The translations under genes and the position numbers were made by a program. A stretch of DNA of 64,000 nt from Macrostomum lignano (Eukaryota): assembly GCA_002269645.1 (NCBI GenBank), contig NIVC01002787.1:34772-98771 (forward strand). The letters run 5' to 3'. Below, in pieces: positions 10,083 to 52,339 of this stretch. Below the pieces are notes generated by a model. The model did not search any database, had not been told where the DNA came from, and was given only the letters and a program-made list of their open reading frames with translations. The stretch's first letter is position 1, and each line of letters starts with the position of its first letter.

Positions 10083-11650
10083 ATTCCCACTCTTTCCATT
10101 AGCATCTCTATTCCTACTCTTTCAGTTAGCCTCTCTTTTCCCAATCTTTCAATTAGCCACTCCATTCCCACTATTTCAATGAGCCTCTCTATTCACACTC
10201 TTTCTATTAGCCTCTCTATTCCCACTCTTTCAATTAGCCTCTTTATTCCCACTTTTTCAATTAGCCTCTCTATTCCCACTCTTTCAATTAGCCTCTCTAT
10301 TCCCACTCTTTATATTAGCCACTCTATTCCCACTCTTCCCATTAGCTTCTCTATTCCCACTATTTCAATGAGCCTCTCTATTCACACTATTTCAATTAGC
10401 CTCTCTATTCCCACTCTTTCTATTAGCCTCTCTATTCACACTCTTTCAATTAGCCTCTCTATTCCCACCCTTTCTATTAGCCTCTCTATTCCCACTCTTT
10501 CTATTAGCCTCTCTATTCCCACTCTTCCCATTAGCCTCTCTATTCCCACTCTTTCTATTAGCCTCTCTATTCCCACTCTTTCTATTAGCCTCTCTATTCA
10601 CACTCTTTCAATTAGCCTCTCTATTCCCACCCTTTCTATTAGCCTCTCTATTCCCACTCTTTCTATTAGCCTCTCTATTCCCACTCTTCCCATTAGCCTC
10701 TCTATTCCCACTCTTTCTATTAGCCTCTCTATTCCCACTCTTTCTATTAGCCTCTCTATTCCCACTCTTTCTATTAGCCTCTTTATTCCCACTCTTTCAA
10801 TTCGCCTCTCTATTCCTACTCTTTTAGTTAGCCTCTCTATTCTCACTCTTCCCATTAGCCTCTCTATTCCCACTCTTTCAATTAGCCTCTCTATTCCCAC
10901 TCTTTCTATTAGCCTCTCTATTCCCACTCTTCCCATTAGCTTCTCTATTCCCACTCTTTCTATTAGCCTCTCTATTCCCACTCTTTCAATTAGCCTCTCT
11001 ATTCCCACTTTTTCAATTAGCTCTGTACTCCCATACTTTCTATTAGCCTTTCTATTCACACTCTTTCTATTAGTCTCTTTTCCTACTATTTTAGTTAGCC
11101 TCTCTATTCTCACTCTTCCCATTAGCCTCTCTATTCCCACTCTTTCAATTAGCCTCTCTATTCCCACTCTTCCCATTAGCCTCTCTATTCCCACTCTTTC
11201 AATTAGCCTCTCTATTCCCACTCTTTCTATTAGCCTCTCTATTCCCACTCTTCCCATTAGCCTCTCTATTCCCACTCTTTCAATTAGCCACTCTATTCCC
11301 AATCTTTCTATTAGCCTCTCTATTCTCACTCCTCCCATTAGCCTCTTTACTCCCACTCTTTCAATTAGCCTCTCTATTCCCACTCTTTCAATTAGCCACT
11401 TCATTCCCACTTTTCCCATTAGCCTCTTTATTCTCACTCTTTCTATTAGCCTCTCCATTCCCACTTTTTCTATAGTCTCTTTATTCCCACTCTTTCTATT
11501 AGCCTCTCCATTCCCACTCTTTCAATTAGCCTCTCTATTCCCACTCTTCATATTTAGCCTCTTTATTCCCACTCTTCATATTTAGCCACTCTATTTCCAG
11601 TCTTCATATTTAGCCACTCCATCCCCCCTCTTCATATTTAGCCATTTTTT
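10083..11650. repeat. 27-bp minisatellite (ATTAGCCTCTCTATTCCCACTCTTTCT)n, more than 50 units
   Basis: The unit translates as ISLSIPTLS, which explains the spurious long ORFs on both strands. Confidence 0.97.
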
Positions 11651-12422
11651 CACTCTTTAAATTCATATTCCCACGTCTAAAGAAACCCAGGCGTCTTCTT
11701 TTCTCTATCGTCTCTCTCTTTTCTCCTTAAGAAACGATTGTATCACTGAGCTTGCGTTGCTTTTGCGCAGTGCGCAATTCCGAAGGCTGAAGAAGTTTGG
11801 TTTGTTATTAGCCAAACAGTCAGGCAGTATGAGAGGGACTGCGTAGCAGAGGTGCTCAAAGAATTTCTGTGTCTAACAGGTTTTATTTTCCTGCTATCTT
11901 CTGCTCACAAGCCAGAAAGACTTTCTAACTCACTGGCATCAAAGGGCCCTATTATGAGTGTGAGGCTCACATCTCCAACTCCTCTCTGTACCGCAAATTA
12001 TTCAAGACAGTGTATTTTATAGTCAAGCAAGCAAACTGGTTTAGTTGACAAAATGCAGAGCAATGCATAGTTTGAGCGGGGCAGGGTTATCGCTCGAGCA
12101 GTTTTTCTGTGTGCTGTTGTTAGGCAACCATATCACCCCCAAAGCATTGCTGCGAGTCTACTGTGTCACGCGTTCGCAGGCTGCTGGCTTGGCCCTCAAA
12201 CCTCGGCTTTTGTTATTTGTCTTTTAGTTTAGAGCTGGTCTGGCTGGATAGCCCCGGTCGAGATGAGAGGAGGCCGTTGTTTGCTTCGATGTAAGCACAA
12301 TTCCAGTGCTTACACTCTGCCTTTCACGCATAAAAACTCGTGATACAGACGGCCTCCTATGCATTCCGAGAAATCCTTGTGAGCTTTTTGCAATCTCAAA
12401 ACTTTCTGCTCGCGCAAAAACG

Positions 12423-13544
12423 ATGAGAACAAAGAATAACTTAATATCGCTAGCTGGCGCAGCAGCTGTCTTACTGACTGTAGCATACCTCGTTCGGCGC
12501 AGAAATTTCGCTGATTCTGACACACTGCCAGTTCTGAGCGATGTGCAGTTGATCAAAAACTGTCCCGCCTACAACGAGCTCCGCAGCGTCGACTTCACGA
12601 ACCCCAGCCTGCGGCACCGGCTGTGTCAGGAGACGCCGGCCTATCATTTAGTCAGGGGCAAGTTTCTCCTGTGCGAGCTGAACAGGAACTTACCGCAGCA
12701 GATGTACACCATTGTCAGACAAGGGTCTCCTGTGGCCAATGTGACCCGAGCGATGGGCGGCGGCCGAATGCCGATATTTACCTTCGGCGCGGAGGACTTC
12801 ATTTCTGGGGAGATGCTAAAAAAGAACGCCTGGGAAACTGGCGAAATTCGGACGATGCTCAACCTGTTAAAGCAGTTTCCGACAGACTCGGTAACGTTCC
12901 TTGACGTCGGCAGCAACGTCGGCATCTACAGCCTGCAGGCCAGAGAGCTCGGGTATCCCGTAGTGGCCATCGATGCAAACATTCGTGCATTGGCCAGGTT
13001 GCAAATGTCAGCGAAGAGGCTGGATTTGCTTGATGACAAACTGAAGCTCTTCTGGGGCTTCATCAGCGACGACGTGGCGGTCAAGCGAATCACTTGGAAC
13101 GCTGACGATTTTGGTTGCCACGCCGGAAGCGGCTCGGGTGCAGCGGCTGGCTGGAGACAGAAGGTTACGACAGCAATTGAGGACACTATTCCCGTGATGA
13201 CGGTCAGGGCGGACGAGCTTCGAGAACACATCAGCACCAAGAATGTGATCATCAAGATGGATATCGAGTCCGGTGAGCACCTGTTCATGAAGACTGGCGA
13301 AAAGCTGTTTAGAGAGCTCAACATCATGGCGCTGCAGATGGAGTTCTGGCGGAAGCTCACGGAGCCGCCGCAAGCGTCGAAATATTACAACTTTGTGACT
13401 CACTTCATGACTTCCAGGAACTTCTCTCTGCTGTCCATGAGGACCTTCCAAGTGCAGAAAATCACCACATTTGGTGAATGGGACGGAATATGGATTAGAA
13501 ACGACTTTTTGCCACGAGTTAAGAAAGAGATTCAGATGATTTAG
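12423..13544 (+). CDS. FkbM-family (Methyltransf_21) SAM-dependent methyltransferase with an N-terminal signal anchor, 373 aa, intronless
   Basis: Likely start MRTKNN (ATG 12423), then hydrophobic LISLAGAAAVLLTVAYLV; FkbM motifs FLDVGSNVGIYSL, VVAIDAN, IIKMDIESGE, MEF; uninterrupted ORF. Confidence 0.88.
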   Translation: MRTKNNLISLAGAAAVLLTVAYLVRRRNFADSDTLPVLSDVQLIKNCPAYNELRSVDFTNPSLRHRLCQETPAYHLVRGKFLLCELNRNLPQQMYTIVRQGSPVANVTRAMGGGRMPIFTFGAEDFISGEMLKKNAWETGEIRTMLNLLKQFPTDSVTFLDVGSNVGIYSLQARELGYPVVAIDANIRALARLQMSAKRLDLLDDKLKLFWGFISDDVAVKRITWNADDFGCHAGSGSGAAAGWRQKVTTAIEDTIPVMTVRADELREHISTKNVIIKMDIESGEHLFMKTGEKLFRELNIMALQMEFWRKLTEPPQASKYYNFVTHFMTSRNFSLLSMRTFQVQKITTFGEWDGIWIRNDFLPRVKKEIQMI

Positions 13545-16288: not shown

Positions 16289-18126
16289 CGAGATTTAAGT
16301 GCCGAGGAGATTACTGACCTAGCGCTCCGCGAGCTGCAGAGCATGCTGACCTCCATGGGTGGGAGAAGCCTGCCAGAGTACGGCTTGCCTGCGGCCTCCG
16401 TGATGCCTCAAGATGGACCGATGCAGTTCGATACGATTGAGCAAGCGCAGATTACTGAGGCACGCTTACCAATGCTAACAGATGAGCAGAAAGCCGTGTA
16501 CGAGTCAGTGACTCAGGATCTTGTGAGCGGCAACGGCGGCTTGCACTTCCTGGACGCGCCCGCTGGTACTGGCAAGACTTTCCTGCTGGAGGTTTTGCTG
16601 GCCTTCGTGCGCAGCCGGGGTGAAGTCGCTCTCGCCGTTGCGGCTTCAGGAATCGCAGCGACTCTGTTGCCAGGTGGACAAACTGCGCATTCCACGTGAG
16701 TTGTTTATATTTAATTTGTAAATTATTAGTAACTTACGAATAGTTAAACAAGTAAATATGTGAATACTTCCTCTGCTGTATGATACCCAAATTTTTCCAT
16801 GTCAGGTTCAAGATACCAATTCGGGTATTACGCTCAAACAAGGACGTGTGCGCTGTTGGAGTGCAGTCCAAACAAGCTGCTGTATTTCGCACAGCGCGTC
16901 TAATTGTGTGGGACGAGATTTCTATGACAAACCGGAAGGATTTGGAGGTGGTCGACCGGTGCTTGCGAGATGTGCGGAAGCAGGACTCGCCATTTGGCGG
17001 ACTGGTGTTTGTGTGCGCTGGTGACTTCCGGCAGCTCCTACCCGTTGTGGTGCATGGGACTCGTGCTAACAGTGTCATGGCGTGTGTTAGCCGATCCTCA
17101 CTGTGGAAATACTTCCAACGGCATCGCCTGACGAGAAACATCCGGATGCTGAGCAGTTCCGATTCTGTAGCGTATCAGATGTAAACCGAGCTACTCAAGC
17201 AGGTAAGTCTGATTTCATCAGTTTATTAAATGATTGACTATGATACACTAGACGCGGATTTGTTTTTGAACTCAATTTTTTTAAGTTTGCGTCATTTAGG
17301 AATGTCTGTGCTTAAAAGTGTGTATAGGTTATGAAATATTCGACATTTTAACCCTCCACAGATCGGATCCGGAACAATGAAGCAGGATGCGGAGGAGAAA
17401 GTGTCTCTGCCAGCCGAGATCGTGATTTCTGCGGAAGGGCCTCTCACTGATCTAATCAATTTTGTGTACCCATCGTTTGAAGAACCAGTGGAGAGAGACA
17501 GCTACTTTGCAAGCCGAGCGATCCTGGCGCCTTACAATGACTCAGTGGATGCCATCAATGAGACGTGTCTGGGCATGTTCCCCGGCAGCCTGCGGGAGTA
17601 CCGCTCGATAGACAGTGTGGCCGATGAGGATGCCGCTACGCACTTCCCGCCTGAGTTGCTCAACCAGCTGGATGCTCCGAACTTTCCGATTCACTTGCTG
17701 AGGCTAAAGGAGGGTATGCCAGTAGTTCTTCTCAGGAACATCAACCCGCCACGATTGTGCAATGGTACGCGGCTCATCATACTCGCGATGGGCGAGAACG
17801 TGCTTAGATGCAAGATTGCCGCCGGCCAGTTCACGGGAGACGAGATTCTTCTGCCGCGAATCCCGCTGATTCCAAGCAATGCGGACCTCCCCGTCAGTTT
17901 CAAGCGGCTGCAGTTCCCTGTGAAGCCGAGCTTCTGCCTGACGATTCACAAGTCGCAGGGACAGTCTCTGGACACAGTTGGCGTGGACCTCGCTGTCGGT
18001 TGCTTCACTCATGGCCAGCTGTATACGGCTCTGTCGCCAGCGAGGAACGCTGCTAATGTCCGTGTCCGTACTTCTGGAACTAAGACGAGGAACGTGGTGT
18101 ACCCAGAGGTGCTGACTGGAGACTAA
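16289..18126 (+). pseudogene. 5'-truncated Helitron PIF1 helicase (3 exons: ~16289-16696, 16805-17202, 17362-18126)
   Basis: Close paralog of 32930-34753 with the same two introns. Motifs DAPAGTGKT, WDEISM, GDFRQLLPV, TIHKSQGQSL. Premature TAA at 17182 and R-to-P change in motif VI (TALSP versus TALSR). Confidence 0.9.
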
Positions 18127-18197: not shown

Positions 18198-20185
18198 GAG
18201 AATGAAATCAAAGTCGCGTAGAGTCTCAATGAACTGATAGCCCTGAGAGAGTACATTGAGTAAATCCTATTTACGAGGGATGTTTCATAAGTTCTTTCTT
18301 ATACTCATCTATAACAGTTTTACACGAACATGATATACAGTCATTTAACAGACAAAACTACAGCCACTGACCACTGATCATACAGTCACTAAACAGATAG
18401 TAGTACAGGTATAAACAGACAATAATACAGTCACTATGCAGACAGTCTCTAAACAGACAATAATACAGCCTCTAAACAGACAATACAGCCTCTAAACAGA
18501 CAATACAGCCTCTAAACAGACAATACAGCCTCTAAGCAGGCAATACAGCCTCTAAACAGGCAATACAGTCTCTAAACAGACAATACAGCCTCTAAGCAGG
18601 CAATACAGCCTCTAAACAGGCAATACAGTCTCTAAACAGACAATACAGTCTCTAAACAGGCAATACAGCCTCTAAGCAGGCAATACAGCCTCTAAACAGG
18701 CAATACAGTCTCTAAACAGACAATACAGCCTCTAAGCAGGCAATACAGCCTCTAAGCAGACAATACAGCCTCTAAACAGACAATACAGCCTCTAAACAGG
18801 CAATACAGCCTCTAAGCAGACAATACAGCCTCTAAACAGACAATACAGTCTCTAAACAGACAATACAGCCTCTAAACAGGCAATACAGCCTCTAAGCAGA
18901 CAATACAGCCTCTAAACAGACAATACAGTCTCTAAACAGACAATACAGCCTCTAAGCAGGCAATACAGCCTCTAAACAGGCAATACAGTCTCTACAGACA
19001 ATACGGTCTCTAAACAGACAATACAGTCCCTAAACAGACAATACAGTCACTAGACAGACAATACGGTATCTAAACAGACAATACAGTCTCTAAACAGACA
19101 ATACGGCCTCTAAGCAGACAATACAGTCTCTAAGCAGACAATACAGTCTCTAAACAGACAATACAGTCTCTAAACAGACAATACAGTCTCTAAACAGACA
19201 ATACGGCCTCTAAACAGACAATACAGTCTCTAAACAGGCAATACAGTCTCTAAACAGACAATACAGTCTCTAAACAGACAATACAGCCTCTAAACAGACA
19301 ATACAGACAATAATACAGCCACTAATACAGTCACTGAACAGACCATAAAATACAGTCAGTAAACAGATATAGTACAGGTATATATAAGCAGGTGAAACAT
19401 GTATGTATAATTGGAATTTATAAAGCAGCCCTCATTGAGAGTAGGTTGACTGCATCTTAACTGGGCTAAAAGAGTTTGTGAATGGTGTATAGGAGCTGCT
19501 CTATATACCCTGTGGTTCCAGACTCTAAAAGGAGCATTTGCAGTCAAGCTCTGTAGCAGCCTTAAGCAGAGCGGAGCGACTTAATGTTTGGAATGTCTCT
19601 ACCTTTGCTTACACCCAATGCATGCAATTGAGCAGTGACGCGAGTCGGCAGGTAGTCAGGATGGCATATACATGTACATTTTTGTACTGCTAAAGCTATA
19701 CTGGCTGCTTGTCGATGGCACCATCTGCTGAAGCGACAGTCTATCCTTTTGTAATAAATTATTACATTTTTCAATATCTGTACGAAATATTAAACTTGCT
19801 CAGCGTTAGTAGTCAGAAGCAGATCATATATCGTTTGAATAAATACAAGTGTTTGTTTAACTGTTGTTTCAATTTTTAAACTTCAATTTGTGGTTGTTAT
19901 TAGTTTAAAATTTAATTCGCCGTTTGCTTCTTTGTTAGTTATAGCAGTTAAAAATGGATAAAACAGTTTTTTGTACTGTGTATAATAATCGTAAAACTTA
20001 GAAATGTTTAATAGTTCGGCGAATTTATTCATGCAGATTCGTATTGTTCTACTTTCAAAGTAAGCCAGTATGAAATGGTAAGTGTGTATGTACGGTCATT
20101 CTTTGTCATGACATGCTATGGTGAGAATGAATTATACTTTGAATATTTCATGGCATTAGAATATTCTGTTCACAAAACTTTGTAC
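18198..20185 (+). repeat. Direct repeat X, copy 1 (unique head, 20-bp satellite, unique tail)
   Basis: Matches 25012-26855; ORF 19356-19547 gives the same peptide as 26030-26221. Confidence 0.88.
18350..19345. repeat. 20-bp minisatellite (TCTAAACAGACAATACAGYC)n
   Basis: Directly visible 20-bp period. Confidence 0.97.
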
Positions 20186-20364
20186 TGGTGCGCCATTGTT
20201 TCAAAAGTCCAAAAAAATAAATAAGTCTATCGCGGATTTTAATCAAAAGTCAAAAAAGTAATATAGTTTACTAAGATATAGTTTATTTGTATATATTAAA
20301 ATAAATATTCATTGGAAATTCATTGGCTGCGGCTGCTGTTGCTGTGGCTGCTGTTGCTGCTGCT

Positions 20365-22312
20365 GTTGTTGTTGTTGTTGTTAGTTGGCCCAAACGCGCC
20401 CAGGATCCATGCAGAACCTGGCCAGCGCGACCAAACCATCAGGGTAATCGGACAAGTTGCTGAGGGAGAGCGGAGCTCCAATGAAGCGACGGCGGGCGGC
20501 CTCGAGAGCAGGGCACACTGTCCAGTGCTCAAGGGTGTCTGGTTCGAGGAAGCACCTTTGGCACGTCGGATCCACCGTGGGGTCCATGAGGGCGCGGAAG
20601 GCTCCGAAGAGGCTGGAGTGGCCGGAGCGCAGCCGGGCAAGAAGGACAGCGTCTTTGCGGTTAGTAATAAGCCGACGTTCCTTTTCGGCGTCGGCGGAGG
20701 CATAGGTGAGACGAGATCTCGCGTGGGTGACCGGCTTGTCAACCAGAGTGCGGCGGATCACCGAGGCGGCAGTGGGAAAACTGATGCTGGGGCGCGGTGC
20801 TTCATCGGCGTTGGCGGCAGCGGAGTTAGCAGCGCGGTCCGCGAGTTCATTGCCCGGAATGCCGACATGACCCGGGACCCACAGGAGAGCGCGGCAGTTG
20901 TGCGGGAAGCGGAGGGAAGAGGCCAGGCGGCTGAAGGGACGCTGAAGGGCGCGCAGAAGAGACTGACTGTCAGAGCAGATGATGGCAGGGCGCGTGGGGT
21001 GCGAGCGGAGGTAGTCGAGGGCTAGGACCAGAGCGCGGAGTTCCTCTTCAAAGGAGCTGGTGTAGCGGCTGCCAGCGGACGTGCGGGCTTCCACGGTCGT
21101 CGGGACTGCCGGGTCTCCGATGGTGACCACAGCGGCCGCCCGCCAGCCTCGGAGCCGCCGGCCGCCGAACCATCGCAGTAAATGACGAGCTCAGCCGGGT
21201 GAGACCGGATGACGTCGAGAGCGGCAAGACAGCGCTCCAACGGGGGCGTGGAGGCCGGAGGCAAAGGATTGTCAGCTAGGATCGTCGGAAGATGTTGGTC
21301 CAGCCAGGGGCATGGGAAGGCCGGTGTGAGCGGCAGACGCGGCGTGAGATCAATGCCAAGGCCATTGGCAAGCTGAGCCGAGCGGAGTCTCCAGCTACTG
21401 CGGGCGAGCCGGTGTTGCACGGTGCCCGAGAGGGCGATGGCGCGAGGATGGTCGTTGGGCAGCCTGAGCGCGCGTTCCCTGGCGATGAGGCAAAGGCGGT
21501 CGCTGGTGTTCCTGTAGCTGCCGATGCCGGCCTCCAGGTGCACAGCGTCAAGCGGCGCCGAGCGGTGCAAGCCCGTGACGATTCTGAGGGCCTGGTTTTG
21601 CGCGCGCTCAAGGCGCTCGAAGGAGGTGCTGGAAAGCCAAGGTTGCCAAGCCGGGGCCGCGTAGTTAAGAAGGCTCTGCTGCATAGCCAGGTAGACGCCG
21701 CGAAGGCGCTCCTTGCGCCAACCCCAGTCCCGAGCCGCGAGGCAGGACAGCATGCGGCAGCGGGACAGGACTCTGCTGCAGATGTCGTTGACGTGCGCGT
21801 TAAAGCTGAGCGTACGGTCCAGGGTAATGCCTAGGAGTCTAGGAGTGCTGCAGTGCCGAACTTGGGAATGCCCGATGAAGAGCGAGGGGCTCCAGCTCGC
21901 TTCGCTGGGGTCGGTAGAAAAGAAGGCGATTTCACTCTTGTCAGCGTTGAGCACCATCTTGTTGGAGGAGCTCCAGGCGGTAACAGCGTTGAGGGCGGCC
22001 TGAAGGCGGGAGGCGGCCGTGAGCTTGTTGCGGTGCCTGCATCTGAGAGAGATGTCGTCAGCGTATAACGTGATGCCAACATCCTCAGGGATAACGGAGA
22101 CGACAGGGTCAATGAAAAGCGTAAATAGCAGCGGTCCCAAGACGGATCCCTGCGGAAGGCCTTGGCGCATCGGCTTGGACTTGCTGAGGGACCCGTTGAA
22201 GGAAACCCGAGCGCGGCGGTAGCTGAGGAAGGACGAAATCCAGCGAATGTAAGCAAGCGGGACACCTTTATCAGCGAGGATGGTGATAAGCTTCTCGCGC
22301 CACACTTTGTCG
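20365..22312 (-). mobile_element. 5'-truncated non-LTR retrotransposon (I-group, RT + RNase H + C-terminal CCHC) with a (CAA)n tail
   Basis: RT motifs QGSVLGPLLF and YADD; RNase H YCDGS, EELRAL, CSDSQS, WVPGHVGIPGNELAD; RLRSGH...CQRC...LEHWTVC. One frameshift near 21140; stop at 20381 followed by a CAA tail. Confidence 0.93.
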
Positions 22313-22313
22313 G

Positions 22314-22327
22314 TTGCTGCTGCTGCG

Positions 22328-22358
<31 letters not shown>

Positions 22359-22456
22359 ATGCTGCTGCTGTTGCTGCGGCTGCTGCTGTTGCTGCGGCTG
22401 CTGCGGCTGCTGCTGCGGCTGCTGCTGCTGCTGTTGCTGCTGCTGTTGCTGCTGCA
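22314..22456. repeat. CAG/CAA/CCG trinucleotide tract (polyQ on the minus strand)
   Basis: Directly visible; a similar tract lies on the other side of the LINE at 20325-20380. Confidence 0.95.
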
Positions 22457-23553
22457 GAAGGCGGGCGGCGGCCTTCATCGCGTTGCAGCTGGCAACGCGG
22501 TGGCGGCCTCCACAGAAGAAACAAACGACTGGCAATTAAAAGAAGGGAAATTTTTGCAAAATTTATCAGTAATAATACGAGTAGCATGAAAGTCGGTAAC
22601 AGGCCACAATTAGATAAAATTTAGGACTATACTCGAATGTACTCAAAGCTGAAGATTTACAGTGTCTTAGGAAGGTACTCACTACTCTTTCCGCGTGGGC
22701 CACTGCCGCGCTGCCAGCCGCCTCGCCTACCGCTGCCGCCTCGCCTTCTACCGCCGCCGAATATTTGTGTAATATGCATCTTATCTTTTTATTATTTATG
22801 ACTCTAAAAAAAAAAACGAATCAGACTATATAGGCACTGAAACTGAGGTGTAGGGGCGAATAAAATAGGGGTATGGGTTGTGCGTCGTCGCTTCGCTGAG
22901 CCTTAGGGTGGTTTTCTGTACAAGTCTGAGGCTTCCAATTGTCGGTTGTACAGGCGAGGGTGTGCAGGTCGGGGCTTTAGAGCGGCGATTGGTCTACAAA
23001 TTGTCTAGCGTACTGTTGGCCATGCAGCCTGACTTGAGGGTCGCCTGTTTTTTCTTCCCGGCTTAGAAGGTGCGAAAACGGCTCAACCAGTCAGCCGCGC
23101 CACACAAGTTTTGTTTGTACAGTGAAGTACATGCGACCGCGAACTCTTAAAGTATTGCCTACACTTGCTGAGTCAGTCGGTGAGAATTGTGTCACCATAA
23201 AACGTGATAGCAAAAAACAAAAGGATTAGGTGAGAAAAGTTAGGAGACCTTAACGTACAGCAGAGGGTGCAGTGTGTGCTTTAATGCTGGGCACGGGAGT
23301 GATTGGGGTGGAGTGTCTAGCCAATTAGATTGTGTAATAAAAATAAAAATGAATGCAAAATTGAGTACAATGTACTGGGCTGGAGGGGAGGTGGTGTTTT
23401 TTTCGTGGCTACTTTTATTTCAACATATATACTTTGTGATTTGTTGAGCCTATTTTGTTGTCTTAAAGTTAAAGCTTATCATTGCTTAGAAAAAGTTTGA
23501 TTGATACTTTTTATCAGTTCTTTTTTCAACTGTTGGATAATTTTTTGTGCAAA

Positions 23554-24961
23554 ATGGCCTCTTATTCACAGTCACCTTTGAAAAAGAAGTCGAAGAAGGA
23601 TGGGATTGCCGGTCTGACAGCTGGTCAAATGCCTACGCCTGTCACTGGCCTTGTGACGAACCTGAAAGACGTTCACACGTATAATAACAACAAAGGTCAG
23701 GGCAAGTGTTTTCGTTCATCTTGGTGGACGACTCATCTGAGATGCGAGTCAGCGTCTTCGGTAAGGACCTGCAAGCTGTCTGGGAAGTTTGCAACGATGC
23801 TGAAGCCGTTCGCATATCCGGTGGGATGGTGAAGACTGCCAAGCCAGAGTACAAGTGTACGGACAATCCACTTGAGATGACCGTTTCCGTGGATTCCAAG
23901 GGCTTCATCTATAGAAGCAACGAAGTGCCGGTTGCTCGAGATCCAGTAATTAATTACACTGGCATTAATCAACTGCAACAGACTGGATTGGACAGGTGAG
24001 TGACTAATTGATTGAGTAGTTTTCGTCATGTATTAGTGCTCGAATATCGCGGAGTGAAAGTACATGTAATCGTGTTTTTGGGTGACAGTTAGTTTGCCTT
24101 GTGTTTGAAAATATTTATTATCGCAACACTGTACGAAGCCTGGGTTATTAGTTTCATGATGCTACTGTCAGTGTACAAATACTTTAGAAATATAATGTGA
24201 TGCTTAAGTTAGTGTGTAAATAGTTAAAAAAAGTACTGCTCCCTTTCACTATCAGAATCGTCGATGTGCTGGGAGTGATCGACGCCAGGCAACCGCCTGA
24301 AGAAGTCCGAACGCGTGCTGGGAAGAAGGTTAACGTAGCCAAAGTGACTTTGGTTGACCGAACCTTCGGCTCTGTAAGCTGCACGTTTTGGGGTTCGTCG
24401 TCAGCTCAAGTGGACAGGTGGAACATCGGCGATGTTTTTTCCATAAGAAGAGCAAAGGTGCAGGAGTATTCGGGCTCCGTCACGTTGGGATGCTCGAACT
24501 CTGACGTAAAATGCAACAGTGACGATGGTGAAGCCAGAGTCTTGGCTGACTGGTATAGGAATGCAAAGGAAGGCGATACCCGATTTGAACCTGTGCCCGC
24601 TCCAGTGCCTACTCCAGGACTTGGTGCTGATGAGATTGGAGTCGAAAGTGTGACCACCATTCGAGAGCCTGCTGCCTTGTTTGAGTTTTATGAAAAACAC
24701 TCGAAGGAAATTGTGAGGGACTTTGGAAATGGCAAAAAGGTGAGTGATTTTCTACAAATTTAGTTGCTTAATATGAATTTCTTATTACACATATTTTATA
24801 TCCTTATACATTTTTCGTTCTCGCAGATTCGATACAGACGAGTGTCGACGGGTGATGACCGGAGTCAGTTTCACCGCAGTGGAGGTGCCGACTGTCAGGA
24901 CGAGTCGAGCAGAATGTCGTTCGATGATCACAGCGTACAGAACAGCACTTCGTATCAGTGA
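23554..24961 (+). pseudogene. RPA70-like ssDNA-binding protein (two OB folds), 3 exons (23554-23995, 24256-24739, 24827-24961), frameshift at ~23705
   Basis: GK/VFSFILVDDSSEMRVSVFG resembles DBD-A and VDVLGVI...VTLVDRTFGSVSCTFWG resembles DBD-B. A 1-nt deletion splits exon 1; the last exon is less certain. Confidence 0.82.
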
Positions 24962-25011: not shown

Positions 25012-26855
25012 GAGAGTGAAATCAAAGTCGCGTAGAGTCTCAATGAACTGATAGCCCTAAGAGAGTACATTGAGTAAATCCTATTTACGAGGAATGTTTC
25101 ATAAGTTCCTCCTTATACTCATAGGGACATAAATATAACAGTACTTAAAGTAGACATTACGCAATAAATACAGTCTCTAAACAGGCAATACAGTCTCTAC
25201 AGACAATACAGTCTCTAAACAGACAATACAGTCTCTAAACAGACAATACAGTCTCTAAACAGACAATACAGTCTCTAAACAGACAATACAGTCTCTAAAC
25301 AGACAATACAGTCTCTAAACAGACAATACAGCCTCTAAACAGACAATACAGTCTCTAAACAGACAATGCAGTCTCTAAACAGACAATACAGCCTCTAAAC
25401 AGACAATACAGTCTCTAAACAGACAATACAGTCTCTAAACAGGCAATACAGTCTCTAAACAGACAATACAGTCTCTAAACAGGCAATACAGTCTCTAAAC
25501 AGACAATACAGTCTCTAAACAGACAATACAGTCTCTAAACAGGCAATACAGTCTCTAAACAGGCAATACAGTCTCTAAACAGACAATACAGTCTCTAAAC
25601 AGGCAATACAGTCTCTAAACAGACAATACAGTCTCTAAACAGACAATACAGCCTCTAAACAGACAATACAGACAATAATACAGCCACTAATACAGTCACT
25701 GAACAGACCATAAAATACAGTCAGTAAACAGACAATACAGTCTCTAAACAGGCAATACAGTCTCTAAACAGGCAATACAGTCTCTAAACAGGCAATACAG
25801 TCTCTAAACAGACAATACAGTCTCTAAACAGACAATACAGTCTCTAAACAGGCAATACAGTCTCTAAACAGGCAATACAGTCTCTAAACAGACAATACAG
25901 TCTCTAAACAGGCAATACAGTCTCTAAACAGACAATACAGTCTCTAAACAGACAATACAGCCTCTAAACAGACAATACAGACAATAATACAGCCACTAAT
26001 ACAGTCACTGAACAGACCATAAAATACAGTCAGTAAACAGATATAGTACAGGTATATATAAGCAGGTGAAACATGTATGTATAATTGGAATTTATAAAGC
26101 AGCCCTCATTGAGAGTAGGTTGACTGCATCTTAACTGGGCTAAAAGAGTTTGTGAATGGTGTATAGGAGCTGCTCTATATACCCTGTGGTTCCAGACTCT
26201 AAAAGGAGCATTTGCAGTCAAGCTCTGTAGCAGCCTTAAGCAGAGCGGAGCGACTTAATGTTTGGAATGTCTCTACCTTTGCTTACACCCAATGCATGCA
26301 ATTGAGCAGTGACGCGAGTCGGCAGGTAGTCAGGATGGCATATACATGTACATTTTTGTACTGCTAAAGCTATACTGGCTGCTTGTCGATGGCACCATCT
26401 GCTGAAGCGACAGTCTATCCTTTTGTAATAAATTATTACATTTTTTTAAATTTTCACCTGCTATTAGCAGCAGAAGATCACATTATATCATTTGAATAAA
26501 TACATGCGTTTGTTTAACTATTGTTTCAATTTTGAACGTCAATTTTCGGTTGTTTAAAATCTAATTAAAAGCTCGTACCGTTTGTTGTTTCTTTATTTGT
26601 TGTAGTTCGTAACAGTACAGTTGAATAAAACTGTTATTTTGTACATGTACTGTGTATAATAATAGTGAAACTAACAGAAATGTTTATTAGTTCGGCGAAT
26701 TAATTCACGCAGTTTCGTATCACCCTACACTCAAAGTATGCAAGTATTAAATGGTACGCGTATATGCACGTTCTTTGTATTGACGTGCTATGGCGAAAAT
26801 AAATAAAGCTTCAAATATCTCACGTCATTAATTAAGAATATTCTGTTCACAAAAA
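25012..26855 (+). repeat. Direct repeat X, copy 2 (includes 20-bp satellite 25150-26035)
   Basis: Matches 18198-20185; near-identical to about 26445, more diverged after. Confidence 0.88.
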
Positions 26856-26866
26856 TTTGGTGCATA

Positions 26867-27225: not shown

Positions 27226-28533
27226 TTCCTATATACTAAAAATGAGTTGTCTGTATGTATGCATGTATATGGGTATGCGATTGATTTCAGAAAAATTGGC
27301 TCAACCGATTTTTTTTTCAAACTTGCACCATTCGATCAGAAATTTTCCTGGGACGGTACATGTATCTTGGCTAAGAAATTGCTCAATGTTAAAGGGATTA
27401 AATATTCGAAAAACATGCTTTTTTGCAAAGGTCAAGCAGCTCTTTCGACCTGGAATGCATTGTAAGAATGCTAGAGAAAAAACTGACTGACTGAATTCTG
27501 ATTGTGATAAAGATTGCATAACAGCTGAATTGTACCTCCGCCTTGTATTGCGTCACTTGTATTGCGTCCTTGTATTGTTGAAAACACTGTGTAGAAGCAT
27601 ATTACGAGACTTGATTTAGACTGCGTAACCATACTGACCGATTGAAAAATTGATTATGTCATAACTGCTTCGTGCTCATCTTATAGTGTAATTTTTGTTA
27701 AACATAAAAGAAGCGTCATGAAAAACCTAAAAAAATGCTAGCGTCGGGGCTTACTAATTCAGAACCACAAGTGTCATAAAAATCGTAAAAGAAGTGTCAT
27801 TTTAAGCATGAAAAGTTCCTGTAAAGCATAGAAGAAGCGCGAATATTCGAATAACACACATGCCTTTCTGCAAGGGTCAAGCAGAACTTCCTACTGTGAG
27901 CCATTCTTATTGGAATTGAACTTTGCAGCGCCCAGTAAAGTAGTATTTTTTGTCGCCAGGCTAGAGAGCTATAAATGTAGACTGCGAGAAAAGATTGTAC
28001 ATTATAAAATGTCCCCGTGCACAATTGACAAACTAACTTTAAATGCTGGAGACAGGGATAGTGAGAGAGTGAAATACATGCACATATATACAGTATCTAA
28101 TTGATTCACAATATACGAACCATGTTGAGACTGACCCTCCAAAATGTAATAAAACCGTCTGATTATAAAAAAGTCCAAAAGTGCCACAGAGATAGATGTA
28201 CATTGGCTACTGAGGCTTGCGCCTCCTTCAGAAAATTTATCTGAATCCTTTCACATAGGAGAGTTAGAGTTAGGTGTTTGAGAGATAGTATTGAATAATA
28301 AAAAAGTCCTGACCAATTAGCAGGCGGGTATTTGAGAGAATTTAGGCTTGCTGTACACACTGACGGTCTAACAGTGTACAAATGGTGTCCAGCTTTTTGG
28401 GATTGGGTGGTTGCTGAGTTTAAAACGCGTGACATTATAGACTTCATACCTTTCTCTTTTCTCGCACACAACCCCTACTATCCTTTCTTTTCATTATAAC
28501 TCAAAATTCTTATCTTTCAATTTGAATTCCAAT

Positions 28534-31500
28534 ATGGCTCGACGTGGCACCAGCGCATTGAAGAAGAGCAGAGATGCCAAGAAGAAGCGTCAGCAAGAGA
28601 GTGCCGTTCAGCGAGAGGAGCGGCTGGCTGGACTGCGGCAGCAGAAGAATGAGCGAACGGCCATGGAGACTGACGCGCAGTGAGAAGAGCGGCTGGCTGG
28701 ACACCGGCAGGAAAATGCTGAGCGAAGGGCAACGGAAACAGACGCTCAGCGAGAAGAGCGCCTGACGAGACTCCGGCAGGAAAATGCTGAGCGAAGGGCA
28801 ACGGAAACAGACGCTCAGCGAGAAGAGCGTAGATCTAGAGACAGAACTCGTGCGGAGAAGCGACGCGCTTCAGAAACCGAAGAGCAACGAAGAGCTCGAG
28901 TCGAAGCCGAGCAAATTCGCCGTCGAGGAGTGTCGGCTGGCAGGTAGGATGACATTTTAATTGGAGCTATATATTTTATAGCTATATAAAATCCAAGTGC
29001 CCATTGTTCCTAATTCGGGGTTTTTTCTATCTTAGCTGATGTTCTATTGGTACTTGGGCATATAATTAAAAACTGGAATCTGTTTCGTGCATTTTTTCTC
29101 ATCTTTTCAAGTCGATTGCTTTCCAAGAGTTTTATTTAAGAGATCAGTATAGAATAGCATAAAATTTATTCGTCACTACTTTAATTACCGGCAAATGAAG
29201 TTGTGTATAATTTTTTTCTAATATTCCAGGTTTGATAGTAGTGAGTTGGCCACACCGTCTGTGGTACCTTTTGATGCGTTGCGCATAATTCGCATTCCTG
29301 GTGATGGGAACTGTTTTTTTTATGCAGTCTGTGATCAGTTGCAGGGAACTCCACTTGAGACCGATGCGGCATCTTTAAGACACGAGCTGACGAGCCGTGT
29401 AGTGCAGATTATGCCAGAATTGATTGAACAAGGCTTTGTTTTGCCAGAAAATGCTGATTTCATTGTTGATTCCTCTTTTTCTGAAGGCACATATGTGCCT
29501 GATGAAGTTGTTCCGCTTTTAAGCCGTTGTTTTAATGTTGATCTGGTGATTTATCAAGAAAACGGCACTGTACTGCAGTACTGTATGTCCCCTTTGCAGC
29601 CACCGATTGCAATCGTCCGAATTCTTTTGCGTCATGAGCATTATGAGTCATTGCGATTTGCTAATCCGATTCCAGTTTCTGAGCCCATTGTAGATGCAGA
29701 GGAGCCAAGATTAACTCAGAAGAGTGCAGGTCATTTTGGCGCAAGACCTGCTCAAGAGAGGTAGGTCATTGGTGTGACTGGTCATCATAATTTATTTGTC
29801 ATCGAACTCAAGTTGTTTTATTCCAATAAATTTTTTTGTAAACTGAAAGATTAACTGGGAAAACTGTTTGCCATTAATCCTTCCTAATCCTAACCCTTCC
29901 AATCACAGGCCAGAACGGATTATCAGGCCTGAAGCGCCAGCCCATAACTGTGGCCCAATGGACAGAGCATGCGACCAATGCGGTGCATTACTTTGGTGCT
30001 CTGAGACGAGGAATTTCTGCTGCGCCAAAGGCAAGGTAAAGCTGCCCAGCCGCACCGTGCCTCAAGTGCTGGCGGATCTGTACCTGGGGCGTCACAGACT
30101 GAGTGCCGAGTTCCTGACCAACATTCGGAGTTACAACTCGGCGCTGCACCTGACATCGCTGGGTGCCAAACTGCGGTTGGTGCCAGGCTGGTGCCCCAGC
30201 TTCATCATCAGCGGCCAGTTGCATCACAACACGGCGCCGCTGTTTGCAGAGGATTCAGCTGAGCCCCATGGCTGGCAGGTGTATTTCAATGATCGCGAAC
30301 TTGAAAGCCGCCAGAGTCTCAGCCAGAAGGTGAAGCCGGAGCTACTGGAGCTATTGCAGACGCTGCTTCACGAGTGCAACGGCTATGTCTGCAGCCTGAG
30401 GGCAGTCGCTCATCGAATCAGTCAAGATCCGGAGTTGGGAGATGCGCGAATCGTTATTCACCCTGACCGTCGACCATCTGGGGAACACATTCGGTATGTC
30501 TGCAAGACATTCTAATAAGATATTTTGCGTAATAAATTATCCAATTATCCAATTTGTACAGACTCTGTATCCCACAAACTCCGTTCAAAATCAGGCGCTA
30601 CAACTTGCCTACGGCGAACGAGGTCGGTATCCTGATTGTGGAGGACAATGAGAACACACCGGCCAGTCGGGACGTCGTGATTCAACTGCGTGGGGGCGGT
30701 TCTCAGCGAATCAGTGAGACGCACCGCTCATATGACCCGCTGGAGTATGTGCTGCTGTTCCCGAATGGCGAAGATGGCTGGCACCCGGAGTTGCTGATGA
30801 GTAATGGCAAGAAATTGACGCCCATGAAATACTATGCGAGCGAAATCATGGTGCGAGCGGGCCAGTTCAGTGTGCTGCACTATGGCCGAAGATTATTTCA
30901 GCAGTACTTGGTGGACATGTGTGCCAAGATTGAGGCAGAGAGGCTGCTGTATTTGCGGATCCATCAGCAGGACCTGCGCAGCGAGACATACAGCGGTCTG
31001 CGGGACGCTCTGTTTGCAGCTGATGGCAGGTCTACCGACAGAGATCCGAGTGACATAGGCAAGCCCGCACATGTGCTTCTGTCTTCGAGCTTCGTTGGCG
31101 GGCCAAGGTACCTGATGGAGAGGCTACAGGACGCTATGACCTATGTTCACAAGTTTGGTAAGCCGGACCTGTTTGTCACGGCAACATGCAATCCGAATTG
31201 GCCGGAGATCAGCGCCCAGCTGCTGCCTGGACAGCGGGCAGAAGACCGGCCGGACATTGTTAGCCGAGTCTTTGAAATGAAGAGGAAAGCTCTTCTGGCC
31301 CAGTTGACCAAGCGCTATGGGAAAGAGGCCGCTCACGTTTTCTCACTGGAGTACCAGAAGCGTGGTGAGTAAAAATTCTGACTTGCAAGAATCAAAGTTT
31401 TAAGATTTATTAAAATTTAGATTTACAAAGGTTTTGTGATATTTTCTAATACTTTTTTTGACGCTCCAGGTCTTCCCCATGTGCACTTTCTACTGTGGCT

Positions 31501-34500
31501 CGTGAGCGGTCAGCGAGTGACTCCGGACCGATACGATGACATCGTGTCTGCCGAGATTCCGGACCCAGAGCAGCAGCCTGTGCTGTATGAGCTGGTGAAG
31601 ACGCACATGATCCATGGCCCCTGCGGCAAGGAGAATCCGGCGTGCCCTTGCATGGAGAATGGCGAATGCAGCAAGGGCTTTCCGAAAGAGTTCCAGCAGG
31701 TGACGCTGACCAGCGATACTGGCTACCCACTGTACCGCAGACTATCGCCTGAGATGGGCGGATTTACAGTGGACAAACTGTTCAAAGGCCGGAGCATTCG
31801 CATGGACAACAGGGAAGTTCAAACGCTAATATATTGCTTAGTTGTGCATTTCAGCTTTTGTTTCTGAAAGTTAATGATATTATTTTTTCATTAAAACAGG
31901 TGGGTCGTTCCGTACAGCCCTGACCTGTTGCTCCAGTTTGCGTGCCACTTGAACGTCGAAGTTTGCGCCACTGTGAAGTCGGTCAAGTACGTGATCAAGT
32001 ACCTGTTAAAGGGTGGCGACATGGCGACGTTCAAAGTCGATGCCAATAGGAATTCTACTGAACCGAGAGAGCAGGCAGTGGGTGACCAGCAGCCGAAGCA
32101 AACGACAGGAAATAAGCCGCGTGATGAGATTAAGGAGTACCTGTCCGCGCGCTACATTGGTCCAATGGAAGCCGTGAATACCATCTTGGGCTTTGAAGTA
32201 ATTCGCATTCTAATTATTATTGGCTCATTTTAACCAGAGCTGTGAAACCTCGTCATAGTATAAATTGAATTTCCATCGAAACTTAAAGGCTGTATATTTT
32301 CCTTTCACTTTCTGATCAGGTGCACAACAGGTTTCCGGCGGTCATCCGACTCTGCGTTCACAAGTCGGAAGAGCAGCTCGTGTATTTCAACGAGGGGACC
32401 GCAAGAGCAAAAGCGAGAACGCCGAAAGATTCGACGTTGACGGCATTTTTCAAGCTGTGCCGTATTGACGAATTTGCTGGGTCCTTGCTCTACACGGAGG
32501 TGCCGTCCTACTTCGTGTGGCACTCCAGCGAAAGAGAGTGGCGGCGGGCCAAGCAGGGTGTGCGAGTCGATGGCCATCCGGGTGTAGTGCGGAACAAAAA
32601 CGTTGCACGCATGTACACGGTGAGTCCAAGAGCAGGTGATTTATTTTATGTTCGAATGCACCTTTTGAATGTTAGGGGACCGACTAGCTTCGAGGCGCTG
32701 CAGACCGTGGACGGCGTTGTGCATCCGAGCGCCAAGGCTGCTTGCATGGCCCTTGGCCTGCTGCAGCGAGATGATCACTGGCGGCGGTGTCTAGCTGAGG
32801 CCGTTCAGTCAAGAATGCCAAGAGCCCTGAGACATCTTCTGGCCGTAATTCTCATATGGGGTGAGCCTGAGGATGGCAGCGACCTCTGGTGCAGTTTTGC
32901 CCAGGATCTCAGCGAGGACCTGCGGTTTCACCACCGAGACTTGAGCACCGAGGAGATTACTGACCTGGCGCTGCGTGAGCTTCAGAGCATGTTGATCTCC
33001 ATGGGCGGGAGAAGCCTGCCAGAGTACGGCCTGCCTGCGGCCTCCGTGACACCTCAAGATGGACCAATGCAGTTTGATACGGTTGAGCAAGCACTGATTA
33101 CTGAGGCGCGCTTACCAATGCTGACAGATGAGCAGAAAGCGGTGTACGAGTCCGTGACTCAGAATCTTGTGGACGGCACCAGCGGCTTGCACTTCCTGGA
33201 CGCACCTGCTGGCACTGGCAAGACCTTCCTGCTGGAGGTTCTGCTAGCCTTCGTGCGCAGCCGGGGTGAAGTCGCTCTCGCCGTTGCGGCTTCTGGAATC
33301 GCAGCGACTCTTTTGCCAGGTGGACAGACGGCGCATTCAACGTGAGTAATTTATTGTCAATATTTCAAAAAGCAGTTGTAAATATTTCGTGTGCTGTAAA
33401 TATGTTCGGCATGGTGAAACTATTTGTCTATACCAGGTTCAAGATACCAATTCGGGCGATCCGTTCGAGCAAAGACGTGTGCGCTGTTGGAGCGCAGTCC
33501 AAACAGGCCGCTGTATTTCGGACAGTGCGTCTAATTGTCTGGGACGAGATTTCTATGACAAACCGGAAGGATTTGGAGGCCGTCGACCGGTGCTTGCGAG
33601 ACGTGCGGAAGCAGGACGTGCCATTCGGCGGAGTGGTTTTCGTTTGCGCTGGGGACTTTCGCCAGCTGCTGCCCGTTGTGGTGCATGGGACTCGAGCCAA
33701 CAGCGTCATGGCGTGTGTCAGCAGATCCCCACTGTGGAAATTTTTCCGGCGGCATCGCCTTACAAGAAACATCCGATTGCTGAGCAGTTCCGATTCTGCA
33801 ACGTATTTGAGATACACCGAGCTACTCAAGCAGGTAAGTTTGTTTTCATCAGTTTATTTATTGGAAGATTTAAGGATATTCGGTTTCTTTCGTGTTGAGA
33901 GCTCCATTTAAAAAATTGTGGCTTATTCAAGAATGCCTAGCTCAAAGTCTGTCTAGCGTTTTATATATTTGACTTTTAACTCCCCCAGATCGGATCCGGA
34001 ACAATTGAGCAGGATGCAGAGGAGAAAGTGTCTCTTCCTGCTGAGATCATCATTTCTGCGGAGGCGCCGCTCAATGATCTGATAAATTTTGTGTACCCAT
34101 CGTTTGAGGCGTCAGTGGAGAGGGACGGTTACTTTGCAAGCCGAGCGATCCTGGCGCCTTACAATGACTCAGTGGATGCCATCAACGAGACGTGCCTGGG
34201 CATGTTCCCCGGCAGCCTGCGGGAGTACCGCTCAGTAGACAGTGTGGCCGATGAGGATGCCGCTACGCACTTCCCGCCTGAGTTGCTCAACCAGCTGGAT
34301 GCCCCGAACTTTCCGATTCACTTGCTGAGGCTAAAAGTGGGTATGCCAGTAGTTCTTCTCAGGAACATCAACCCGCCACGATTATGCAATGGTACGCGGC
34401 TCATCATACTCGCGATGGGCGAGAACGTGCTTAGATGCAAGATTGCCGCCGGCCAGTTCACGGGAGACGAGATTCTTCTGCCGCGAATCCCGCTGATTCC

Positions 34501-38246: not shown

Positions 38247-38356
38247 AGAGGTCACGCTTCACACACAACTGCCATAGCGTCGAGGCCGCGTCATCCAAGT
38301 GCGTCAGCCAGGCCCGGCCTCGACGCTATGGCAGTTGTGTGTGAAGCGTGACCTCT
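38247..38356. repeat. Perfect 42-bp inverted repeat with a 26-nt loop
   Basis: 38247-38288 is the exact reverse complement of 38315-38356. Confidence 0.92.
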
Positions 38357-52313: not shown

Positions 52314-52339
52314 AACAAAAACTTATTGAGACTCTCGGG

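Follow-up and report, generated by a model that had tools for sequence, protein, structure and literature searches.

Among Helitron fragments in the genome of Macrostomum lignano, a minus-strand segment opposite a gene for an RPA-like protein was described in an initial annotation as a hidden gene, interrupted by a LINE (20309–22779), for a protein with RGG repeats, a zinc knuckle and a polyQ tail. Is there such a gene and, if so, does it belong to the transposons, to the host or to neither? The window analysed here is a stretch of 64,000 nucleotides of contig NIVC01002787.1. The basic observation is confirmed: a small intron-containing gene encoding RGG repeats, one zinc knuckle and polyglutamine is present on the minus strand and is split by a LINE. 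For the reasons given below, this is probably an accessory gene, linked to a transposon and now dead.

The gene, called locus 1, is laid out on the minus strand as follows. A TATA-like box (cctatatag, 22826–22833), read directly and putatively functional, lies ~50 nt 5′ of the ATG. Nearer the start codon, a run of 11 Ts followed by AG (22816–22804) ends 25 nt 5′ of the ATG and, from its sequence, may be a candidate trans-splice acceptor. The ATG itself, also read directly, is at 22779–22777. Exon 1 (22683–22779, 97 nt, 63% GC) encodes the RG/RGG-rich segment MHITQIFGGGRRRGGSGRRGGWQRGSGPRGKS and ends one base into the following codon. The phase-1 intron (22529–22682, 154 nt, 34% GC) runs from a GTGAGT donor at 22682 through a pyrimidine tract to a CAG acceptor, ...ttttaattgccAG at 22530–22529. 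From 22528 onwards, exon 2 encodes (I)VCFFCGGRHRVASCNAMKAAARLL and then polyQ. Its 5′ part (22313–22528) encodes the knuckle segment (I)VCFFCGGRHRVASC, NAMKAAARLL and a polyQ/P tract, its last 13 nt being the upstream copy of a target-site duplication (TSD); its 3′ part (20309–20365) contains the downstream TSD copy, further Q/P codons, QPMNFQ and the stop TGA (20311–20309). An AATAAA polyadenylation signal, read directly, is found at 20282–20287, 22 nt past the stop. GC content is 63–66% in the exons and 34% in the intron, and the shift falls exactly on the donor and acceptor consensus sites. The splice from 22779–22683 to 22528 had thus been placed correctly in the initial annotation, and the RGG stretch, knuckle, Gln/Pro tail and polyA signal that it listed are all present on the minus strand.

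The interruption is a 5′-truncated non-LTR retrotransposon of 1,947 nt (20366–22312, minus strand), running the same way as the gene; the boundaries of the insert are taken from the exact 13-bp repeat CAGCAGCAGCAAC that flanks it at 22325–22313 and 20365–20353. It has an RT domain within which the 5′ truncation falls, a simple-repeat tail and the 13-bp TSD. Pfam identifies RVT_1 (4e-19) and RNase_H (4e-6); the RT occupies ~22311–21829 and is followed by RNase H and a C-terminal Cys/His motif, with a frameshift near 21100–21130 and a 3′ end of TAA(CAA)5. Excision restores an in-frame ORF ending in QPMNFQ and the stop at 20311–20309. The rebuilt protein has 118 residues, provided that the 13-bp duplication marks the insertion point, and is shorter than the ~125–130 aa first estimated. 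An ORF in the RT frame that runs through the repeat (21022–22587) was dismissed as meaningless, as CAG repeats are open in every frame.

One other copy of the gene was found, the M. lignano UniProt protein model A0A1I8JBM3 (P0127). Its first 48 residues are identical to those of locus 1 across the same exon 1/exon 2 junction, and its residues 1–32 are the exon 1 product. Past residue 48 it runs into a different LINE, the two LINEs being only ~25% identical. The model may be an ab initio prediction, and hence is perhaps not independent evidence of splicing. The knuckle exon alone served as the query in an exhaustive search of 1.84 billion protein representatives, and no uninterrupted copy of the gene was found among them. 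The 60-aa N-terminus had no match among 5.8 billion proteins in a word-indexed search. Neither a degenerate knuckle pattern nor an RPA profile found anything in JGI metagenome contigs, the PDB sequence search returned chance matches only, and no Rfam family matched anywhere in the window. The best non-self match of the knuckle exon is a plant gag-like protein, P0125, with CX2CX3HX4C repeats (E = 1.3e-6 summed over three stretches).

The knuckle of locus 1, CFFCGGRHRVASC at 22523–22485 (minus strand), likewise has the spacing CX2CX3HX4C, as against X4 in the canonical motif. The knuckle claimed at the outset therefore stands as a Cys/His motif and falls as a canonical one: it matches none of the Pfam knuckle models (zf-CCHC PF00098 and relatives) even at E ≤ 10, and has neither the CX2CX4HX4C spacing nor the gathering score of zf-CCHC. 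By spacing, it is a knuckle of the retroelement X3 type. CX2CX3HX4C is the spacing of the second knuckle in the ORF1 of I/Jockey/Nimb-type LINEs, and such knuckles are nucleic-acid-binding modules in LINE ORF1 and gag proteins (PMC3391268, PMC2330053). In the six-frame translation of the window, CX2CX3-4HX4C occurs four times, versus 0.2 in shuffles, with two of the four inside a gypsy gag.

Could the knuckle then simply be left over from a retroelement, either a BEL/Pao gag or the ORF1 of a LINE (the inserted one or an older one), with the rest of the gene illusory? Besides the spacing, this is favoured by the insert, which is broadly that kind of LINE and bears an RNase H, and by a co-oriented LINE RT that follows the knuckle in both known copies, locus 1 and A0A1I8JBM3. 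However, the knuckle is not within the stretch delimited by the TSDs but ~160 nt upstream of the 5′ junction of the LINE; it is single, as opposed to the ORF1 triplet; and an intron sits one codon upstream of it. Retrotransposed elements are normally intronless. The flanks contain no gag, protease or RT domain at E ≤ 1, so that locus 1 has none of the knuckle triplet, gag domain, adjacent PR/RT of the same element and intronless structure of a LINE ORF1 or BEL/Pao gag. Further, the N-termini of the two copies are identical over 48 residues while their LINEs differ. Membership of the knuckle in the inserted LINE is rejected on the TSD position, the intron and the different LINE in A0A1I8JBM3. 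A BEL/Pao gag origin of locus 1, which the initial annotation had named as its own possible refutation, or a LINE-gag origin is thus unlikely, even though the spacing is still the retroelement X3 variant; that the remainder of the gene is also illusory seems to us very improbable.

A more serious competitor is that the whole assembly is non-functional chimeric debris, in which (GGC)n-like and (CAG)n microsatellites were joined to a knuckle scrap from a retroelement gag/ORF1 or a host gene, the result being a chance ORF with usable splice signals and gene models that are artefacts of TE-rich DNA. The composition of the protein is consistent with this. It is almost wholly of low complexity, with the RGG pattern RRRGG, RRGG, QRG and PRG and ~60 Q/P residues. 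Short exons of high GC content and a triplet repeat stay open in whichever frame they are read, so the openness of an ORF made mostly of simple sequence is statistically meaningless. The X3 spacing, the match to P0125 and the lack of intact homologues in the protein searches point the same way, as does the capture of gene fragments for which Helitrons are known (PMC5148889). What argues against debris is the recurrence of the arrangement elsewhere in the window, as follows.

RPA-like gene #1 (23555–24763, plus strand), with two OB-fold exons (PF16900 REPA_OB_2, 4.4e-10), is indeed divergent from locus 1, as had been noted, its start at 23555 being 775 bp from the locus 1 gene, although it carries a frameshift near 23695. 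Its best matches are M. lignano REPA_OB_2 proteins (52–63%). RPA-like gene #2 (39100–40438, minus strand) shares ~55% amino-acid identity with #1 in tblastn/tblastx comparisons. Downstream of gene #2 there is a 47-nt hairpin, 98% complementary, at 38242–38361. Divergent from gene #2, at an ATG-to-ATG distance of 938 bp, is locus 2 (41377–42070, plus strand), a decayed analogue of the locus 1 gene 18 kb away from it. Exon 1 of locus 2 (41377–41830) is PY-rich, polyQ and basic; a phase-1 intron (41831–41960, GTAAGT...CAG) follows; and exon 2 (41961–42070) reads L-G-L-stop-RFCQRRGHIAAEC and then an RS tail. There are in-frame stops at 41509, 41674 and 41969, one of which sits at the first knuckle Cys. 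When Cys is written for that TGA, and only then, the knuckle scores 20.7 bits against zf-CCHC PF00098, where the cut-off is 20.8.

Loci 1 and 2 have in common polyQ, a phase-1 intron 1–2 codons 5′ of the knuckle, a GC-rich knuckle exon and a divergent RPA-like neighbour at 0.8–0.9 kb. At both, the exon/intron boundaries match sharp GC shifts and a T-rich/AG element ends 25 nt 5′ of the ATG. The domain order differs, being RGG-knuckle-polyQ at locus 1 versus PY-polyQ-knuckle-RS at locus 2, and when the two intergenic spacers were aligned locally, the score did not exceed that of shuffled sequence. Homology of the two loci is suggested by their architecture and a 13-residue motif. Both of the large CAG/CAA arrays in the scanned stretch from 17 to 44 kb lie inside these two genes.

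A divergent polyQ and knuckle neighbour thus accompanies two of the two RPA-like genes in the window, and the linkage to RPA foreseen in the initial annotation is upheld by the second, diverged pair. Because the RPA-like genes have diverged to 55% and retain the same pairing, the pair appears to have been kept together over a long period. This recurrence, the coincidence of exon boundaries with GC shifts at both loci, and the intron phase and T-rich/AG element common to them are not what debris predicts. On the other side, every copy is broken or chimeric: locus 1 is split by a LINE, A0A1I8JBM3 is fused to one, and locus 2 has three stops. The copies free of a LINE and with conserved Cys/His that had been hoped for were not found in our searches, and no intact copy bears witness to purifying selection. 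Hence the original interpretation is supported in part, namely a coherent, spliced, LINE-split gene whose link to RPA recurs at locus 2, and lacks an uninterrupted copy. We regard chimeric debris as possible but doubtful. With two loci bearing such pairs and both broken, a knuckle and RPA-like gene pair recurs whose knuckle copies are both dead.

The same pairs might instead be ordinary host genes, one for a small RNA-binding knuckle protein and one for an RPA-like paralogue, driven by a common bidirectional promoter; genome duplication would have copied them, and here TE insertions would have made pseudogenes of them. CCAAT/ATTGG boxes occur in the spacers of the divergent pairs, and several REPA_OB_2 proteins are annotated in M. 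lignano. The M. lignano genome was recently duplicated, which would explain A0A1I8JBM3 as a homeologue. Yet all four genes lie among Helitron RepHel fragments, satellites, MITE-like repeats and a LINE, and three of the four have disabling lesions. A host gene under selection would be expected to survive intact somewhere in the protein databases, and was not found. Moreover, in a related autonomous Helitron (contig L001) a gene of this RPA type is directly behind OTU-RepHel, which ties the type to Helitrons. We consider a host origin of the pairs quite improbable.

The surroundings agree with a link to transposons: the neighbouring TE genes have decayed to the same degree as the knuckle genes. 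Repeat X (18203–20185, plus strand), which includes a 20-bp satellite, follows a truncated RepHel A (16289–18126) and ends ~100 bp from the locus 1 poly(A) signal. Repeat X′ (25015–26860), 85–88% identical to X, follows RPA-like gene #1, so X and X′ bracket the locus 1 gene together with that gene. No Helitron termini were identified around the pairs when the end of the X/X′ homology, palindromes and inverted repeats were examined. The L001 Helitron lacks the knuckle motif in the 7.2 kb sampled, and although both RPA-like genes in the window have a knuckle partner, the knuckle gene is absent from L001–L005. Finally, RepHel of L001 is 80–88% identical to that of the window, but RPA only 40–52%; the pairs may thus not belong with the RepHel copies next to them.

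The best explanation as a whole, to which we give about even credence, is that locus 1 is a dead two-exon knuckle gene from a recurring divergent knuckle/RPA-like unit of a Macrostomum-type flatworm genome. The unit would consist of a short, low-complexity gene with a single CCHC knuckle, transcribed divergently from a Helitron-type RPA-like gene. The predicted 118-aa product of locus 1 would begin with an RG/RGG-rich segment, continue with a single CX2CX3HX4C knuckle of retroelement type and end in a polyQ/P tail, and the gene was inactivated when the 5′-truncated, RNase-H-bearing LINE with its (CAA)n tail entered the CAG/CAA repeat that encodes the polyQ/P tail. Intact copies, by analogy with nucleocapsid (NC) proteins, would encode a zinc-dependent protein that binds or chaperones single-stranded nucleic acid, and a promoter in the shared spacer would drive them together with the gene for the RPA-like ssDNA binder. 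Helitron transposition passes through single-stranded DNA, and the rolling-circle intermediate would be where the protein acts. The role in ssDNA handling or evasion of silencing advanced initially, and condensate formation, are conceivable for such a protein. It is tempting to go further and propose that the unit is part of the element proper in flatworm Helitrons, or in some non-autonomous lineage among them, where an undescribed accessory gene, transcribed divergently together with the RPA-like gene, would encode an NC-like single-knuckle RGG/polyQ protein that coats or condenses the intermediate together with RPA; taken whole, we think this rather unlikely. If true, it would be the DNA-transposon counterpart of the NC proteins of retroelements. 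A conserved partner of this kind would mean that a DNA transposon had acquired the nucleic-acid chaperone logic of retroelements, and would open a way to study the protection or packaging of the intermediate. The window holds only fossils, with no demonstrated function, and what makes the recurring gene pair valuable is that it can guide searches of Macrostomum and other flatworm genomes.

How does locus 1 compare with known systems? Its RGG/RG repeats and long Q-rich tract resemble the sequence pattern of RGG-box and polyQ prion-like proteins. CNBP-type proteins, Vasa N-termini and plant RZ-1-type glycine-rich proteins are cellular examples in which RG/RGG repeats and a CCHC knuckle also occur together; locus 1 differs in having no detectable sequence relationship to them, in its single knuckle of non-canonical spacing, in lacking an RRM or a helicase domain, and in its polyQ tail. 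Helitrons carry accessory genes for RPA-like proteins, OTU proteases and AP endonucleases, as well as captured fragments, and to our knowledge the RPA-like protein is their only known accessory ssDNA binder. The locus 1 gene is like these in its neighbours, a Helitron-type RPA-like gene and copies of OTU-RepHel, and in being as decayed as they are; unlike them, its type does not occur on L001, the contig of the related Helitron. Some Helitrons, e.g., FoHeli3, are reported to carry additional ORFs that run in the opposite orientation and do not encode a transposase (PMC5148889), and the literature searched describes no CCHC-knuckle/RGG/polyQ gene as a Helitron companion. With the knuckles of retroelement nucleocapsids and LINE ORF1 (I, Jockey, Nimb; gag NC), locus 1 shares the Cys/His spacing, the basic surroundings and the weak similarity to P0125. 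It departs from them in its one knuckle, its intron, the absence of a gag/MHR domain and of a Pfam knuckle match, and its position outside the inserted LINE. By analogy, the activity that the locus 1 protein would have in common with them is the binding and chaperoning of single-stranded nucleic acid.

The candidate, a small gene for an RGG, zinc-knuckle and polyQ protein that is split by a LINE, reads on the minus strand from an ATG at 22779. Exon 1, of 97 nt, encodes MHITQIFGGGRRRGGSGRRGGWQRGSGPRGKS plus one nucleotide and is followed by an intron of 154 nt (22682–22529) with a GTGAGT donor and, at its 3′ end, a pyrimidine tract and CAG. Exon 2, beginning at 22528, encodes IVCFFCGGRHRVASCNAMKAAARLL and then a polyQ/P stretch. 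The intron has a GC content of 34%, against 63% for exon 1 and 64–66% for exon 2, and the shift coincides exactly with the proposed splice sites. The ATG is preceded by a TATA-like box, ~50 nt upstream, and by a T11-AG element (22804–22816, minus strand) that ends 25 nt before it.

From 22312 the sequence turns into a non-LTR retrotransposon (Pfam RVT_1, 4e-19; RNase_H, 4e-6), which begins within its RT domain, is frameshifted in its RNase H region and ends 3′ in TAA(CAA)5. An exact 13-bp repeat, CAGCAGCAGCAAC, flanks this LINE on either side (22325–22313 and 20365–20353). Excision of one copy together with the intervening 1,947 nt yields an in-frame 118-codon ORF ending in ...QPMNFQ-TGA (stop at 20311–20309), followed by an AATAAA at 20287–20282. 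The duplication, sitting in a triplet repeat where such repeats are easily found by chance, is consistent with target-primed insertion, short of proof; the landing of a (CAA)n-tailed LINE in a CAG/CAA tract would fit microhomology-guided priming. At the sequence level, then, the initial annotation of a LINE-interrupted RGG/knuckle/polyQ gene with splice sites and a polyA signal is confirmed.

The six-frame translation of the window contains four CX2CX3-4HX4C motifs, where composition-preserving shuffles give 0.2; a Ty3/gypsy gag-protease ORF (Pfam; 294–1574, minus strand) accounts for two of them, and a third has stops all around it. The gypsy gag knuckles (CFRCNAKDHWARSC and CSKCGRVGHLRDAC) are both of the canonical CX2CX4HX4C form, whereas the spacing in the candidate is X3. 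That the candidate might itself be a gag or ORF1 remnant is unlikely, since it has an intron and a single knuckle, its flanks are free of gag, protease and RT domains by Pfam, and its knuckle is not within the stretch bounded by the TSD of the LINE.

A word-indexed protein database gave no match to the 60-aa N-terminus of the candidate. With the knuckle exon as query, HMMER run exhaustively against 1.84 billion representatives gave four weak matches. One of them, the M. lignano protein model P0127 (UniRef100_A0A1I8JBM3, 114 aa), is identical to the spliced candidate over residues 1–48 (48/48), across the ...GKS|IVCFF... junction, and continues as an RT fragment (...SGFADDLAAW...) that is absent from the window and only ~25% identical to the window's LINE. 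The shared N-terminus and junction indicate that a second copy of the candidate exists, a homeologue or paralogue, likewise fused to a LINE. This gene model uses the same splice junction; as it may be ab initio, it is consistent with splicing. No LINE-free protein copy was found among the 1.84 billion representatives, and for this reason the view that the candidate is a captured fragment, or chimeric debris with no function, stays a serious rival.

Beside the candidate is an RPA-like gene (RPA #1; 23555–24763, plus strand) with a Pfam OB-fold match, whose best matches are M. lignano REPA_OB_2 proteins (52–63% identity). A second such gene, RPA #2 (40438–39100, minus strand), was detected by tblastn, the query being a related Helitron's RPA, and is ~55% identical to RPA #1 in protein. 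At an ATG-to-ATG distance of 938 bp, the plus strand carries another small gene, locus 2, which is divergent from RPA #2. Exon 1 (41377–41830) encodes MNPYLSNPYLSYPYPY..., then polyQ and a basic stretch; the intron (41831–41960; 130 nt, GTAAGT...CAG) is in phase 1, as in the candidate; exon 2 (41961–42070) reads L-G-L-stop-RFCQRRGHIAAEC, then RDLPRRRSRSRSRS. The TGA occupies the first-Cys position of a canonical CX2CX4HX4C knuckle, which with Cys restored scores 20.7 bits against PF00098 (cut-off 20.8). Two more in-frame stops, both TAA, are at 41509 and 41674.

The two genes have in common the knuckle, a long CAG/CAA-encoded polyQ, a same-phase intron one to two codons ahead of the first Cys, GC-rich exons around an AT-rich intron, a T-rich/AG element 25 nt before the ATG, and divergent placement beside an RPA-like gene. 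Their domain order is not the same, nor are their remaining low-complexity parts, and the intergenic spacers of the two pairs have no alignable similarity. A polyQ and knuckle neighbour is present at both RPA-like genes of the window, and the two large CAG/CAA arrays in a tandem-repeat scan of 17–44 kb are exactly the candidate and locus 2. Chance recurrence is an unattractive explanation, and we read the pairs as probable diverged copies of one two-gene unit. The proposed linkage to RPA is borne out by this second pair; the initial interpretation is partly supported, in that the gene model and the linkage stand, and the proposed function, the status as cargo and the intact copies do not. The T-rich/AG elements (22804–22816, minus; 41345–41352, plus), each ending exactly 25 nt before its ATG, may be spliced-leader trans-splice acceptors or else a coincidence; trans-splicing is known in Macrostomum.

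Pfam places Helitron RepHel pieces at 16289–18126 (RepHel A) and 29258–34753 (RepHel B, plus strand), the latter with an OTU-like N-terminal part. Five Logan contigs (L001–L005) carry OTU-RepHel, with protein pieces mostly 80–88% identical to those of the window. In L001 an RPA-like gene lies 390 bp downstream of OTU-RepHel on the same strand, so that this type of RPA is Helitron-borne; the L001 protein is only 40–52% identical to RPA #1 and RPA #2. No knuckle motif occurs anywhere in L001–L006. The OTU-like cysteine-protease region lies upstream of the Rep domain (window 29258–29710, plus strand; L001 2–670, with GDGNCFFHAV...) and no AP-endonuclease domain was seen. RepHel therefore appears to be that of a Helitron which has OTU and lacks the Helentron endonuclease.

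A 2-kb repeat, X (18203–20185, including a 20-bp satellite), starts 75 bp after the truncated RepHel A and ends ~100 bp from the poly(A) signal of the candidate. Its copy X′ (25015–26860; 85–88% identical) follows RPA #1, so that X and X′ bracket the candidate/RPA pair. The satellite arrays (18335–19367 and 25167–26021) hold ~43–50 copies of the consensus ACAGCCTCTAAACAGACAAT; a different, 21-bp array (35910–36322) lies behind RepHel B. The layout is compatible with a non-autonomous element that has a 3′ region in common with the RepHel element, with terminator read-through capture, or with separate insertions of X. Helitron termini were searched for in the window and none identified, so the candidate as Helitron cargo is plausible but unproven.

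All elements of the candidate and locus 2 region are fossils: there are frameshifts in RPA #1 (near 23695) and in the LINE itself, RepHel A is truncated, RepHel B is broken into at least five ORFs and locus 2 has three stops. This decay and the surrounding context make it less likely that the candidate and RPA are a host gene pair.

The window is eukaryotic DNA with many transposable elements. A Polinton/Maverick-like region (50153–63170) has capsid- and ATPase-like ORFs at 55–61 kb by Pfam, namely a double-jelly-roll capsid-like ORF (56485–57771, minus strand) and an A32-type packaging ATPase-like ORF (59465–60397, plus strand), and a 0.5-kb repeat, 92% identical (50153–50656 and 55877–56388). 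The M. lignano contig L006 contains a repeat 82–89% identical to 53710–54519; this repeat, the best matches of RPA #1 and the 48 residues shared with P0127 place the source of the window in M. lignano or a very close relative. A ~1.6-kb tandem array (10083–11663; self-matches at multiples of 27 nt) gives rise to an ORF of 502 aa that matches no Pfam family. Upstream of RepHel A, a 412-aa ORF (12306–13544, plus strand) with a weak, below-cut-off match to FkbM-type methyltransferases (PF05050, E = 3.9e-4) may have been captured as a fragment or be an unrelated gene. A GC-rich inverted repeat at 38242–38361 (47 nt, 98% complementary, 26-nt loop) is found ~0.75 kb downstream of RPA #2 and may represent a subterminal palindrome of a transposon. 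MITE/SINE-like short dispersed repeats, 84–90% identical, occur at 9756–9895, 27383–27523 and 47536–47673 and at 39679–39931 and 49478–49726, one of them within the RPA #2 intron.

Searches of Pfam, PDB and Rfam found nothing that bears on the function of the candidate. The same X3 spacing has been described in I/Jockey/Nimb LINE ORF1 proteins, at their second knuckle; these proteins bind single-stranded nucleic acids (PMC3391268, PMC2330053). The best non-self match of the knuckle exon, P0125, is gag-like and has CX2CX3HX4C knuckles in repeated form. Combined with the RG/RGG repeats, these likenesses suggest that the most likely activity would be nucleocapsid-like binding or chaperoning of single strands, beside an ssDNA-binding RPA-like protein; the polyQ tail may be a mere expanded microsatellite. 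The literature search returned no paper combining Helitron, RPA and zinc knuckle. In papers that have both “Helitron” and “zinc knuckle”, their co-occurrence looks incidental by title and abstract, and it is so in PMC12477816. Plant Helitrons have RPA-like genes, and one fungal Helitron group has an additional ORF on the opposite strand whose function is unknown (PMC5148889). The candidate belongs within known kinds, those of Helitron-associated accessory or captured genes and of NC-type knuckle proteins.
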